Below are positions 3,221 through 7,024 of a stretch of DNA of 13,769 bases, one piece after another. Under the pieces are notes generated by a model. The model was not told the origin of the DNA. It worked only from the letters and a program-made list of their open reading frames with translations, and did not search any database. Made by a program: the position numbers and the translations under genes. The stretch lies in the sequence record NC_028256.1; one strand, given 5' to 3'. Position 1 is the stretch's first letter. Each line of letters opens with the position of its first letter.

Positions 3221-5257
3221 CTAGGAGGGCTGGAGGGAGATGCTCTCGATCACGCCATAGGCTTTAACGAAGACTCCAGAGACCTGTAACAGCGAGGCGT
3301 CGGCCAGAGCCTTCAGACCTACCTCGACATAGTAGTCGCCAGCACCTAGCTGGAGGTTGTTCAGCTCGAAGGACAGGGTTTTCACCCCCTCCATACCAGG
3401 GGGTAGATCCTTCTCGATAGTTACTACAGTATCCTCTACATGCTTTATCAAGTTGCCGCTGGGATCGTAGAGCTTCACAACGGCTATCACGTAACCCGTG
3501 TTTCCATAGCTGTCAACACCGTAGTAGTACACCATCATCAGGATCCTGAGAGTGTAGCTGCCGCTGGCTGGTGCATTGAGCCTAACCTTGCTGTAGGCAT
3601 ATGCCCATGCATCCTCGTATATATCGCTAAAAGCAGCTACCCTCAGCAGCCAGCCGTCTCCCGAGACACCATAGTCTGCATAATAGCTTGTTAGACTGAG
3701 GAAGCCAGTGCTGTCTCCTCCAGTCTCGACAAGCTCCCCGCTCCAGAGCGCCTTCGGCTCCTGCAGAGGGTCTAGGGGAGACCTCCCGAGCCTCTGAGCC
3801 AGGTCCAGGTACAACTTGAGGGCCTGCACCGCCAGGATGGTGCTCTCGCTGTTCACTACGGCAAAGGGCCACTCGCTGGGCATGGGTCTCAATGCTTCTC
3901 CCACATCATAACCTAGAGTTGCCAGGACTCCAGTTACAGAGTCGAGGCCGCTTGTAAAAGTGTCCAGGATACCCCAGGCGCTAGGTTTTGAGACGAGGCT
4001 GCCTATATCATAGGCGGCGGGCCACCATCCCCTGAATAGGGCTAGCCTCACAGGGCCCCAGGGTGTGTCGTGCTCATAATCCCACTGTAGTCTGACAAGG
4101 ATGCCAGCCAGCCTATCGGCCATATAAAGTATGTCGTTGCCAGCCACCCACCTATCACCAGTCGTGTCATAGTACTTTACCAAGGCTGCCAGCAGAGTCG
4201 CATTGAGATATACTGGATAACCCTTGTAGCTCCAGCTAAGCCCGTAAACATTGGCCTTCTTGAGCCCGTACCCATCCCATCCGCCCTCTATAATTGCCTC
4301 TGCGATTAGCTGCTCCGCTTCGCTCTGAGCACTGGCGCCATACTTGTCAAGGAGATGCATAGCTCTAAGTAGCTTATGTAGGGGGAACTCCTTCCACCCA
4401 GAGATAGCCTCGTTGAAAAGGCCGAGGGAGTCGAGAATGTAGATCCTGCTCTTGTAAGGATAGTTAACCAAGTAGTCGCCCACCTGCCAGGGGTGCCCTT
4501 CATAGCCGTTCCAGGAGAGCCAGGTGCTGTACCTGTAGTCGAAGAAGCTGTCTGGATACGTTTTACTCCTGCCAAAGAGCGGCGCATACACGTCGTAGTT
4601 AAAGTCTACAACATTGTCCCAAAGCTCCTTCATCTTACGTGGATAGTAGCTGTAGCCCTCGTCCTCCAGCAGCCAAGCCGCTATTATGGTGCTGTGCCTG
4701 AGGACGTATCTCGCACTGTGGAACTTGTAGTCGTTCCCCTCATAGATTGTTTTGGTGGTGCTCCAGCCCTGTGTAACGCCGTAGTACCAGTACGATCCTC
4801 TGGTGCCTAGCGCTAGGTCGAACTGGTATTCAGATTCGTCGACGTATACTAGTAGCTCGTCAGTATTGTAATCAACGTTAGTGAGCGATGCATAAATCAC
4901 TATGTCATAGTCGCTGTCGCTGTCGACATTGAAGTAGTATCGCCACGCTACCATATTGTTTGTGACGCCAACCAGCTCCGTCTTGTAATATTTGTCGCCA
5001 GGATCTAGGAAGCTACCTGGAACATAGAGTTCGCCGTTGTACTTAACCATGATTGTCGGGCTGGGGTAATCTGGCATTACGTAGTAGGTGCTACCGTTAA
5101 CGTCTACGGGCCTGATGGCATCGAGAACTGCCTGGACACCCAGGTCTATCGCATTCTGCACGTCAGTCAGCGTCAGCCCGCTGGCCTTCACTGGTACAGC
5201 ATAGAGTATCGCCTGCGCTAACAGGAGAGCGACCAGAGCTAGAGACGCCACCCTCAA
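3221..5257 (-). CDS. Large secreted/virion protein (678 aa) with a probable (alpha/alpha)-barrel core and beta-rich domains; candidate receptor-binding or glycan-active protein
   Basis: N-terminal signal peptide (MRVASLALVALLLAQAILYAVPVKA), Tyr/Trp/Gly rich. Helical repeats such as NATLLAALVKYYDTTGD...ADRLAGILVRLQW and NSESTILAVQALKLYL resemble six-hairpin glycosidase/prenyltransferase-type barrels. TTTTAAA at 5276-5270 upstream. Confidence 0.85.
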   Translation of the reverse strand: MRVASLALVALLLAQAILYAVPVKASGLTLTDVQNAIDLGVQAVLDAIRPVDVNGSTYYVMPDYPSPTIMVKYNGELYVPGSFLDPGDKYYKTELVGVTNNMVAWRYYFNVDSDSDYDIVIYASLTNVDYNTDELLVYVDESEYQFDLALGTRGSYWYYGVTQGWSTTKTIYEGNDYKFHSARYVLRHSTIIAAWLLEDEGYSYYPRKMKELWDNVVDFNYDVYAPLFGRSKTYPDSFFDYRYSTWLSWNGYEGHPWQVGDYLVNYPYKSRIYILDSLGLFNEAISGWKEFPLHKLLRAMHLLDKYGASAQSEAEQLIAEAIIEGGWDGYGLKKANVYGLSWSYKGYPVYLNATLLAALVKYYDTTGDRWVAGNDILYMADRLAGILVRLQWDYEHDTPWGPVRLALFRGWWPAAYDIGSLVSKPSAWGILDTFTSGLDSVTGVLATLGYDVGEALRPMPSEWPFAVVNSESTILAVQALKLYLDLAQRLGRSPLDPLQEPKALWSGELVETGGDSTGFLSLTSYYADYGVSGDGWLLRVAAFSDIYEDAWAYAYSKVRLNAPASGSYTLRILMMVYYYGVDSYGNTGYVIAVVKLYDPSGNLIKHVEDTVVTIEKDLPPGMEGVKTLSFELNNLQLGAGDYYVEVGLKALADASLLQVSGVFVKAYGVIESISLQPS

Positions 5258-5347
5258 GGCGCATCGGTGTTTAAAATATCAAGGATAATGTCTAGTCTAT
5301 CACTAATTCATGGCCGCTCTAGGCTACTCTAAACAGCTTCCATCGCC

Positions 5348-6353
5348 TTAAATCCGTCTGGCCAGAGCTACAGCTCTCGCCAGGGCGATTGCAGCCGCCA
5401 GGGCCCCTCCAGCCGCTGCAGCCGCCTCGGGCAGACCCCAGTACTGACCCCTTGCCTTAGCCTCTGCAATGTACTGCTTGGTAGAGTTGTACAGGTAGTA
5501 AGGGTCCTTTATGGCTGGGTCGTTAGCTGGCTCTATGAAAGTGTTCTCATGGTACTCGTTCCAGCTAGTTATGGCTATCAATCTCACTCTGTCAAGGTTG
5601 CGGAGCACCCATTCCCACTGCCTCTCGTACCAGCCCTGGGATAGGTCGTAGTCTATAGAGAGGCCAGGGCTCCTGAAGTGGTCATCCCTATAACGTGGGG
5701 TGAGGACAACATAGCCGTCCCTCCTCACCCTCAGCTCCCCGCTCAACGCATTGTCGTAGTCTGGCCAGTAGTCCCAATCCTGGTAGCCTGCACTGTCAAT
5801 GTCATTACCTACTATCCTGATTGCGTAGCCAGGGAAGTCGGGCCTCGGGTCGTATGCCAAGCCTATAGGGTTGAACGCCAGCACCAGGGGCTTGCCGTCC
5901 AGCCTGAGATATGCTCCTGGGTAGCGGTCGATGAAATTTTGCTTTATATAAGCTAGGGTCTGCTCCCAGAACGCCCTGTCATACCTCGAGGGGTCGTTGC
6001 CGAGATAGGGCTCAACGAATATGGCGGCCTTGAGTCCGTAGAGCTGCGCCCTCCAGAACACCCTCCTAGCCGCCTCGTCCTCGAAGCCCCCTGGCCCCCA
6101 CCACGATATGAAGAGGCAGTCTATGCCAGCCTCCCGCATCCTCTGGAGCTGCCAGTCGATAACCCTAACGTCCCTGCTGTCGTAGAGGCCGATAACAGGC
6201 ACTGCAAGAACAGTGCTGTCCCAGTGCCTCCCATCACCGCTGTACCATGGGTAGAAGTAGACGCAGACTATAGGCTGGCTAGAGGAGTATACCGTGATGG
6301 GGGCTGTAGATAGTGCTAGCAGGAAAAAAGAGTAGTGCTGCTTCTCTTCTCAC
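5348..6353 (-). CDS. GH99/GH71-like glycoside hydrolase (endo-alpha-mannosidase family) with signal peptide and C-terminal membrane anchor; frameshifted at 6324-6329
   Basis: GH99-type motifs: VYFYPWY (in frame upstream of the track's 6202 start), GLYDSRD, AGIDCLFISWWG, FVEPY and ITSWNEYHENTFIEP (ExxE catalytic pair). The SD-led GTG at 6353 is in a different frame; removing one T from the T6 run yields a 334-aa protein starting MRREAALLFFLLALSTAPITVYS. Confidence 0.85.
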
Positions 6354-6355
6354 GG

Positions 6356-7024
6356 CTACCTCCCCAGCTTGCCTACAATACCCACCATCCTGTCGAGAAT
6401 CTTTATGACGACACCGAAAACAGCAACAACAACCAGCAGCGGCATCACGGCGGCTACAGCCTCTGTTATAGCGCTGGGGTCGTACATGGCGCTATAATCT
6501 GGCTCCGTCGACAATGTTATACTGCCAGCGGTGAAAGCCTGGGTGGTGCCGTCAGGCGTGTGGGCCCATATGTCGGCTAGGCTAGGCGCATTTATGTTGG
6601 CTAGCTCGTACAGCAGGTTTCCAGCGTCGTCGTAGATCTGAAGCTTGTCCTGGCGGTACTTTATTGTAAGCCCTGCTAGCTGGCTCCAGTCCCCCAGAAC
6701 TACGTCAGTCGTGACGCCTAGCGCAGGGGCCTGTAGCACTATGCTCCCGCTGGTCTTGAAGAATAGAATCAGCACCTCATTAGCGGCTGAGTCCCTGAAG
6801 CTTAGTGCCAGGTTGTCGGTTGCTGGGGCGTTTGTAGTGGAGTCTATGTTAACCTGCAGCCCGCTCCAGGCGACGGTTATCAGTGCTGGAGGGTCTACTG
6901 GGAAGCTGTATGTCTGGTTGACTACTGTAGCGTCTATGGTTACGCTGGCCGCTGCCAGGGCTGGCGCTGCTGGCGCCACCAGCAGTGCTATAGCTATTGC
7001 AAAAGCGACTAGTGGGAGCTTCAT
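6356..7024 (-). CDS. Putative minor virion protein (222 aa): signal peptide, beta-rich ectodomain, C-terminal TM helix and basic tail
   Basis: MKLPLVAFAIAIALLVAPAAPALAA leader, NQT sequon, C-terminal AVAAVMPLLVVVAVFGVVIKILDRMVGIVGKLGR. Confidence 0.8.
   Translation of the reverse strand: MKLPLVAFAIAIALLVAPAAPALAAASVTIDATVVNQTYSFPVDPPALITVAWSGLQVNIDSTTNAPATDNLALSFRDSAANEVLILFFKTSGSIVLQAPALGVTTDVVLGDWSQLAGLTIKYRQDKLQIYDDAGNLLYELANINAPSLADIWAHTPDGTTQAFTAGSITLSTEPDYSAMYDPSAITEAVAAVMPLLVVVAVFGVVIKILDRMVGIVGKLGR

Follow-up and report, generated by a model that had tools for sequence, protein, structure and literature searches.

A divergent GH99-like gene with a frameshift in the archaeal virus APOV1, and its intact relatives

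What does orf10 of the archaeal virus APOV1 encode, and can the provirus carried by Aeropyrum pernix K1 still make the product? The window analysed here is the whole 13,769-nucleotide (nt) stretch of record NC_028256.1, the APOV1 genome, and all positions are counted from its first letter. The locus lies on the minus strand at positions 5348-6353, where two reading frames are found and no single open frame crosses the whole span. The original prediction placed here a membrane-anchored endo-mannosidase resembling glycoside hydrolase family 99 (GH99). A glycoside hydrolase in APOV1, its family unnamed, is already mentioned in the ICTV profile of Guttaviridae (PMC5882108), and GH99 is a direct Pfam match, so that the novelty of the assignment is modest. 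New here are the diagnosis of a frameshift, a conserved orf11-GH99-orf9 module, copies beside tRNA-Leu genes in apparent provirus remnants, and a link to the virus SSV19. The explanation we prefer, which we hold to be rather probable though well short of certain, is that orf10 specifies a GH99-type surface enzyme cutting mannose glycans of the host, and that the APOV1 copy is frameshifted.

The GH99 fold and its motifs in orf10

The catalytic part of the gene is contained in one frame, with the following features:

5348-6349, minus strand: GH99-like enzyme frame of 333 codons between the stop at 6350-6352 and the TAA at 5348-5350; its translation comprises the catalytic (beta/alpha)8 domain, preceded by part of the leader and followed by the C-terminal anchor.
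5546-5560, minus strand: NEYHE (EYHE at 5546-5557), containing E265 and E268 in stop-to-stop numbering.
6095-6106, minus strand: SWWG, its second Trp being W84, aligned with MANEA Y189 and BxGH99 W126.
6005-6013, minus strand: EPY of the GH99 motif H[I/L]EPY (residues 222-226), reading FVEPY in APOV1.

The orf10 translation scores 61 bits on Pfam PF16317 (GH99), where the cut-off is 33 (E 1.4e-16), and NCBIfam and PHROGs contain no family match for it. Searched as a single sequence, it hits BtGH99 (E 9e-11) as well as human MANEA, and NEYHE falls on NEWHE in the alignment. A word-index search returns 53 relatives, all with a precomputed PF16317 match; about 47 of them are 45-67% identical to orf10, about 340 amino acids long and from Desulfurococcales-type archaea. 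Against the GH99 entries of the PDB, a profile of 46 relatives matches BtGH99 over the entire domain (E 1.2e-31) and also human GH99. The blocks held in common with GH99 are YYxWY, HW, PxLGxYSSxD, SWWG, EPY, GKPL and S(F/W)NE(W/Y)HExTxIEP.

The AlphaFold2 (AF2) model of the enzyme frame, with a predicted local distance difference test score (pLDDT) of 90.6 and a predicted template modelling score of 0.85, shows a (beta/alpha)8 barrel that leads into a long C-terminal helix. The best Foldseek matches of this model are GH99 structures (E ~4e-14), with GH71 second (2e-9). In VIA-align the model superposes on MANEA with Z 27.1 and a root-mean-square deviation (rmsd) of 2.7 Å over 270 residues at 22% identity, and on BtGH99 and BxGH99 with Z ~26; the next folds are 5ngw (Z 21.5) and GH71 (Z 19.9). 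The likeness to GH99 enzymes lies in the fold, at Z 26-27 and rmsd 2.7-2.9 Å over ~270 residues, and the differences lie in a chain ~45-60 residues shorter, with shorter loops, and in EYHE in place of EWHE. Pfam, profile and AF2 fold evidence agree on the GH99-like assignment made in the original prediction. To judge from sequence and model, orf10 is a genuine but divergent GH99 member, and membership in the broad sense is well supported.

The motif comparison covers the five GH99 motifs as listed in PMC11025385. The motif EW[H/G]E appears in orf10 as EYHE, with both Glu kept and Trp changed to Tyr. E265 and E268 align with E329/E332 of BtGH99, E333/E336 of BxGH99 and E404/E407 of MANEA, a pair that serves in BxGH99 and MANEA as general base and general acid (PMC6055899, PMC11025385). 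The retained ExxE motif of the original prediction is thus present, at 5546-5560 and in register with the catalytic NEWHE of BtGH99. NEYHE sits inside a block SWNEYHE..IEP that is invariant across 19 relatives, and it is found in 89 of the 94 family members scanned; one of the other rows reads NQYHE and four give no match. E113 and P114 of EPY are invariant in the relatives, and SWWG occurs in 89/94 family members.

The second Trp of SWWG bears on the substrate. Its mapping to MANEA Y189 comes from the profile alignment (MANEA chain index 109, offset 80). The residue at MANEA position 189 sets the sugar preference at subsite -2: Trp marks the mannanase type, with mannose at -2, and Tyr the glucose-specific type (PMC11025385, PMC7703563). 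Archaeal GH99 proteins are known, and 85% of them carry Trp at the 189-equivalent position (PMC11025385). Because W84 occupies that position, orf10 is assigned to the mannanase type. As in bacterial GH99, the eukaryote-specific -2 loop is absent, and the likeness to bacterial mannanases consists of the Trp at the 189/126-equivalent position, the lack of the '-2 loop' and the common YYxWY, SWWG, EPY and GKPL blocks. By family membership, a mannoside or N-glycan would be the likely substrate.

The T6 run, the leader and the membrane anchor

The two ends of the protein and its interruption are described by these features:

5348-6202, minus strand: annotated coding sequence orf10-284, 'hypothetical protein' in GenBank and RefSeq, 284 amino acids from an internal GTG start.
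6279-6353, minus strand: leader frame, GTG at 6351-6353, MRREAALLFF... (MRREAALLFFPAST), 24 codons, stop at 6279-6281.
6324-6329, minus strand: run of six T (T6; A6 on the plus strand), the +1 frameshift site that joins leader and enzyme frames.
6359-6363, minus strand: Shine-Dalgarno-like GGAGG, 5 nt 5' of the GTG at 6353 and overlapping the end of orf11, found by reading the sequence.
5351-5434, minus strand: C-terminal hydrophobic helix with a basic end (LPEAAAAAGGALAAAIALARAVALARRI), ending ARRI, a predicted membrane anchor; Kyte-Doolittle 1.82, model helix 306-332.

The first ten codons of the leader frame supply the true start, n-region and h-region of a signal peptide, and the GGAGG at 6359-6363 is the putative ribosome-binding site. 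With one T fewer (T5), a continuous gene of 334 codons results. The composite obtained by skipping one T begins MRREAALLFFLLALSTAPITVYSSSQPIVCVYFYPWY and reads MRREAALLFFLLALSTAP..., and at its N-terminus a classical signal peptide precedes the conserved first strand. This leader is closely similar to that of the intact relative in provirus L011 (ALFLFLLALTAA). All full-length relatives begin at the leader position with M, basic residues and a hydrophobic leader; they stay in one frame there, and the T6 run is absent. Read in this way, T6 in place of T5 is a one-base insertion that cuts the body of orf10 off from its ribosome-binding site, its GTG and its first ten codons. Because start and leader lie in the other frame, a full-length APOV1 enzyme is possible solely via rare +1 slippage, and the K1 lysogen therefore cannot make much orf10 protein.

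An alternative start within the enzyme frame was considered and rejected, since this frame contains no ATG, GTG or TTG upstream of 6202 and the sole nearby CTG lies ~37 nt from the Shine-Dalgarno-like sequence. No GGAGG is read upstream of the internal GTG at 6202, and the annotated 284-residue protein is without barrel strand beta1 (model residues 27-32) and without the invariant Y33, W35, Y36 and W43. The annotated coding sequence is very probably a truncated frameshift artefact, and the natural product is very unlikely to be 284 amino acids long. Expression of the orf10 protein calls for the composite (T5) reading or an intact relative.

A sequencing error in the 1999 genome, as a source of the extra T, is ruled out by the identical T6 in independent Illumina assemblies. 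Sixteen contigs, some from Logan assemblies of 2023 Illumina runs, yield the exact 284-residue product, and in three Logan assemblies of 2023 runs the T6 region is identical to the window in 181 of 181 columns, T6 included. Contigs of four runs (a 2016 RNA library, 2023 DNA, a 2020 synthetic metagenome and a 2023 RNA library) were compared with positions 5300-6420 and show 0 substitutions and 0 indels where covered; the 2016 RNA-library and 2023 DNA contigs cover the entire stretch, and a 244-nt contig of the 2023 RNA library covers 6220-6420. The RNA-library contigs serve as a sequence check and carry no information on transcription or its level. As independent assemblies show the same T6, the extra T is a genuine property of the K1 provirus.

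Outside the run the gene is well preserved. Among 73 columns that are near-invariant in 48 close relatives, APOV1 deviates at one and intact members at 0-3. The sole deviation of APOV1 is an exchange of Arg for N269 (codon 5543-5545), immediately after the second catalytic Glu. At that position classical GH99 enzymes have Gly, and the relatives of orf10 have a near-invariant Arg. Apart from the extra T, APOV1 orf10 thus looks undegraded, and a very recent loss of function is most likely. For attempts at finding a susceptible host it matters that the K1 copy of APOV1 orf10 may be non-functional.

The same preservation, with one deviation in 73 columns, would also suit a switch at T6, operated by programmed +1 ribosomal frameshifting, transcriptional slippage or T5/T6 phase variation. 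The break sits exactly in a homopolymer, ten codons past a good Shine-Dalgarno sequence and GTG, and tRNA-Phe can re-pair in the +1 frame (UUU to UUC). We nevertheless consider a switch quite improbable: the intact relatives have no run or frame change at this position, so the feature is unconserved; after the run, the 0 frame offers no rare codon or stop to stimulate a +1 shift; six T are short for efficient polymerase slippage; and the DNA and RNA-library contigs all read T6, though contigs hide minorities. In Saccharolobus solfataricus, the alpha-L-fucosidase gene fucA1 is expressed through a programmed -1 frameshift on A-AAA-AAT, and its expression has been demonstrated. Like orf10, it is an archaeal glycosidase gene in two frames at a homopolymeric slippery stretch; unlike it, orf10 would need a +1 shift, shows no evident stimulator and has an interruption that is absent from all relatives.

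The reading we prefer, a frameshifted surface enzyme, draws also on topology. Hydropathy backs both the leader and the C-terminal segment, and the hydrophobic anchor ending in RRI that had been predicted is found at 5351-5434, modelled as one long helix. Where APOV1 has this helix, the transmembrane segment of the relatives is stronger and ends in a K/R tail, and in full-length relatives (~340 amino acids) the leader, catalytic domain and C-terminal transmembrane segment with K/R tail are all conserved. The architecture is predicted to be that of a type-I membrane protein, with a Sec-type signal peptide, an extracytoplasmic barrel, a C-terminal helix and a short basic tail. A signal peptide in frame with the mature domain exists in the relatives and not in APOV1, where the start and first ten codons lie in the other frame. 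The N-terminal signal peptide of the original prediction accordingly holds for the composite (T5) reading and for the relatives, and fails for any single APOV1 frame; the surface display it implied is backed by leader and anchor of the relatives and broken by the frameshift here. Surface-display architecture is real in the family and disrupted in APOV1. Compared with GH99 enzymes elsewhere, orf10 differs in being virus-encoded and in its predicted C-terminal membrane anchor. MANEA is a Golgi protein anchored at its N-terminus, and we know of no membrane anchor on the GH99 enzymes of Bacteroides.

The gene block and the copies beside tRNA-Leu

In the APOV1 genome, orf12, orf11, orf10, orf9 and orf8 form one same-strand block of secreted or membrane proteins, in which orf12 has a C-terminal transmembrane segment and orf8 has three. 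The direct neighbours of orf10 are:

6356-7024, minus strand: orf11, upstream neighbour, 222 amino acids, with a signal peptide and a C-terminal transmembrane segment; conserved.
3221-5257, minus strand: orf9, conserved downstream partner, 678 amino acids, with a signal peptide; AF2 pLDDT 81.9.

The stop codon of orf11 (6356-6358) lies 2 nt before the orf10 start codon GTG, and orf10 is remote from the integrase and regulator genes of APOV1. At least ten APOV1-like elements keep orf11, the GH99 gene and orf9 together, and the GH99 gene is uninterrupted in all of them except APOV1 and the visibly decaying L019. One such element, L011, is a 14-kb provirus in a Calypsonella metagenome-assembled genome (MAG), with nearly all APOV1 genes, a split SSV-type integrase, and ends formed by tRNA-Leu and a 64-nt repeat. 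The block is also present in L092/L093 and L101, and as fragments in L019 and L032. In the complete genome of Pyrodictium abyssi, an APOV1-like island (L100, AP028907.1:185989-208040) adjoins tRNA-Glu(CTC) and carries orf19, 18, 17, 16, 13, 12, 11, GH99, an orf15-like gene and orf9; its order is unlike that of APOV1, as the orf15-like gene separates GH99 from orf9. Same-contig or adjacent-tag pairs (P0011/P0065, P0013/P0058, P0020/P0066) also imply the module, and 20 orf9 homologues were detected, which share contigs with GH99 homologues wherever this can be checked; the adjacent locus tags F7C36_00350 and F7C36_00355 are an example of the pairing. The module is shared by APOV1-like viruses and proviruses of Desulfurococcales. 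With tblastn against 50,697 phage and virus records, APOV1 itself is the sole match, for orf10 as for orf9, and a scan of IMG/VR gives no contig with a detectable relative.

In the model of orf9, a helical middle part is flanked by two beta-sandwiches, one at the N-terminus and one at the C-terminus. Foldseek matches the C-terminal part to carbohydrate-binding modules (CBMs) and to C-terminal domains of phage tailspikes (E 4e-7 to 1e-3), and VIA gives Z 11.1. The helical part resembles (alpha/alpha)6 barrels with VIA Z 11-13, weak values for helical repeats. Among the barrel matches are GH76 alpha-1,6-mannanases (Z 11-12, weak), such as 6u4z, a GH76 structure from a bovine B. thetaiotaomicron strain and an enzyme like the one compared with the SSV19 tailspike (PMC9351363). 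The Asp-Asp pair typical of GH76 is only half conserved in orf9, and the YPDD motif reads YPDS in APOV1, so no claim of GH76-type catalysis by orf9 is made. From its model, orf9 is likely a candidate glycan-binding spike.

The place of orf10 in a membrane-protein block, conserved there in at least ten elements, points to a role in the virion or its morphogenesis and not to a lysogeny gene. This position bears on a second reading, developed from the original prediction, in which the lysogen makes the enzyme, strips or remodels host glycans, destroys the receptor and so blocks superinfection. APOV1 is temperate, and the catalytic domain would be membrane-anchored and outward-facing, as such a role would have it. 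The gene, though, lies inside the membrane and structural block, translationally coupled to orf11 and far from integrase and regulators, and it is frameshifted in the sole known lysogen, A. pernix K1. A receptor-destroying role on the lysogen side is possible, less likely than one in the virion or at egress, and superinfection exclusion is on these grounds an unlikely account of orf10.

Copies outside the block show where the gene can end up. A. pernix K1 has a second, intact GH99-like gene of 375 amino acids, 54% identical to orf10, at G016:C1:367641-368675 (L099:718-1845, minus strand), 400 nt downstream of tRNA-Leu(TAG) at L099:2246-2333. A match to residues 53-99 of the APOV1 integrase (47 residues) reaches 78 nt past this tRNA gene towards the paralogue, which appears to sit in an old provirus remnant. 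The K1 paralogue could complement the broken viral copy, and an intact paralogue elsewhere on the chromosome may make the loss of orf10 tolerable. At eight non-proviral loci (L008, L009, L020, L054, L088, L089, L090, L091), otherwise unrelated in their neighbourhoods, a lone GH99 copy stands 230-840 nt downstream of tRNA-Leu on the same strand; four anticodons (gag, cag, tag, caa) occur beside these lone copies, and among ~55 distant GH99 loci nothing similar is seen. L091 keeps orf20 and an orf19 piece between tRNA-Leu and the GH99 gene, and vestiges of the integrase N-terminus are found at L088 and L099. No attachment-site repeat was found downstream of the lone copies, and their remnant status therefore rests on the vestiges at L091, L088 and L099. 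The lone copies look like leftovers of provirus decay. As such they suggest an enzyme worth keeping for the cell, and the intact ones could be exclusion genes kept after the provirus decayed, which would speak for the superinfection reading.

A quick maximum-likelihood tree places APOV1 beside the remaining viral copies and L089, L090 and L091 (Shimodaira-Hasegawa-like approximate likelihood-ratio test 88, not starred), and the Aeropyrum chromosomal copies (K1, A. camini-like) fall in another, starred clade together with the copy of the P. abyssi element. A recent capture of orf10 from the host paralogue is ruled out by this separate, well-supported clade. The GH99-like family is patchy, in 27 of 256 genomes of the order. 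Copies in MAGs contain in-frame stops or frameshifts at G001:C49:48831-49760, G006:C163:8364-9242 and G017:C4:24443-25333, and further broken copies are found in G186, G256, G258 and L019:5732-6666. Several broken copies and a patchy occurrence together indicate that loss of the GH99-like gene is frequent.

The patchiness would also be expected of cellular-type cargo that serves the host, by mannan foraging or trimming of its own glycans, and is merely ferried by viruses. The wider family belongs to cells and has a broad distribution (Bathyarchaeia, Nitrososphaeria, Actinomycetota and others), with archaeal members known, as noted above (PMC11025385), and the A. pernix and A. camini-like genomes retain lone intact copies. 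The Desulfurococcales-type copies with readable context, however, lie either in APOV1-like elements next to orf11/orf9 or beside tRNA-Leu with integrase or orf20 vestiges, and a fixed place within the envelope block of at least ten divergent elements is atypical of a moron. We find the cargo explanation very doubtful.

Proposed action on host glycans

From the observed homology, fold, motifs, topology signals, conserved module and frameshift, the following course can be proposed for the preferred reading, that of a virus-borne surface enzyme. In the intact relatives the enzyme would sit on the membrane of the infected cell, on the viral envelope or on both, with the active site facing outward. 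It would cleave mannose-bearing glycans of the host surface, for example those of S-layer glycoproteins, and would probably work alongside the orf9 protein with its (alpha/alpha)6 barrel and CBM-like domain. The purpose could be to help the virion get to the membrane at entry, to stop progeny from sticking to the producer cell, or both.

This proposed role in entry or release is based on the genome position and on analogy with SSV19 (Fuselloviridae). Virions of SSV19 turn the heptasaccharide N-glycan of the host into smaller products and free mannose (PMC12042106), and the authors attribute the cleavage to the GH76-like core of the tailspike VP4 (PMC12042106; core also PMC9351363). How archaeal viruses cross the glycosylated S-layer is otherwise largely unknown according to a 2024 review (PMC10791045), and SSV19 (2025) is the sole experimental glycan-cutting virion found in the literature. 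Like orf10, VP4 is a protein from the structural module of a crenarchaeal virus with a mannanase-type fold, and the (alpha/alpha)6-barrel-like domain of orf9 matches GH76, as the VP4 core is GH76-like. The proteins themselves differ: VP4 is a 137-kDa (alpha/alpha)6 GH76-like protein located in the tail, and orf10 a 37-kDa (beta/alpha)8 GH99-like protein with a membrane anchor. APOV1 is enveloped and apparently tail-less, unlike the tailed SSV19, and tblastn detects no sequence similarity of orf9 or orf10 to fusellovirus records. A second, unrelated mannanase type, conserved in the envelope block of the APOV1 group, would suggest that cleavage of mannose-rich surface glycans is a recurrent strategy of entry or exit in hyperthermophilic archaeal viruses.

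A comparison can also be drawn with influenza neuraminidase, the receptor-destroying glycosidase of an enveloped animal virus, which has type II topology. Both would be anchored glycosidases with the catalytic domain outside, encoded among envelope genes and plausibly used at entry and release. Fold and chemistry are unrelated, and the predicted topology of orf10 is type I.

Several points weigh against the preferred reading. The copy is broken: APOV1 persists and, according to the literature, forms virions without a normally expressed enzyme. Its C-terminal anchor is Ala-rich, has an internal Arg and is weaker than those of the relatives. The evidence for T6 consists of assembled contigs, in which any minor T5 variants, in DNA or RNA, would stay hidden. 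Substrate, localisation and role are those that we infer by analogy, and the surface glycans of A. pernix are a weak point of the mannose substrate, as the species is reported to be without the oligosaccharyltransferase AglB (PMC8993221). K1 does give a weak AglB-like match at G016:C1:1249865-1250530, within a 706-codon open frame (E 3.5e-21, 29% identity), which aligns with the C-terminal part of Acidilobaceae AglB, and a similar one occurs at G027:C1:1196563-1197231; the 706-residue protein may be a very divergent oligosaccharyltransferase. On the side of the enzyme, identity to characterised GH99 members is 16-22%, H[I/L]EPY has lost its His (Phe in APOV1, Leu or Met in relatives), and the segment that carries GH99 Y323 (BxGH99 Y252), a residue close to the active site, is an insertion relative to the family, unaligned in the profile alignment.

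With the shorter loops and the good matches of the related fold families GH71 and 5ngw, these last features would also fit a protein that has the GH99 fold and either another specificity or a non-catalytic, glycan-binding function. Both catalytic Glu, the 189-equivalent Trp and EPY are, however, kept nearly without exception in the family, and such near-universal conservation of the motifs argues for GH99-type catalysis; we rate a different or lost activity as unlikely.

A decay of viral-type copies in hosts lacking AglB was considered and dropped. The initial sample was suggestive: all four copies in STT3-negative genomes were broken, and neither of the two in STT3-positive ones. The Pfam STT3 model proved insensitive, with matches in 134 of 256 genomes of the order; a closer AglB query finds a full AglB in G017, whose copy has a stop; and K1, G027 and G001 give weak AglB-like matches.

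A wider scheme, which we put forward only tentatively and think has perhaps some chance of being correct, joins orf10 and orf9 in a two-protein, glycan-attacking module of APOV1-like enveloped viruses: an anchored GH99 endo-mannanase together with an (alpha/alpha)6/CBM spike. Once a provirus had decayed, its enzyme gene would be retained next to tRNA-Leu, domesticated by the host as a surface glycosidase, and the copy of this kind in K1 might complement the frameshifted orf10 in trans. Bacteroides pair GH99 and GH76 enzymes on yeast mannan, and the orf10/orf9 module would echo that pairing. If true, the module would provide the first case of an envelope-borne glycosidase in an archaeal virus, and the intact relatives are concrete proteins for expression and assay.

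Further elements and forms were seen in passing. At L015, a GH99 locus, the 5' part of tRNA-Leu(GAG) recurs as an exact 69-nt repeat (236-304 and 5187-5274) 5 kb upstream of the tRNA, and an integrase fragment adjoins tRNA-Leu(GAG); the repeat suggests another integrated element, of a different type, beside the GH99 locus. The Logan contig L005 (SRR26374280_10, 13,796 nt, 2023) equals the APOV1 genome plus 27 nt, a layout as expected for a circular episome assembled with a k-mer overlap, and its depth is 23.6, against 18.9 for a chromosomal contig in the DNA run.

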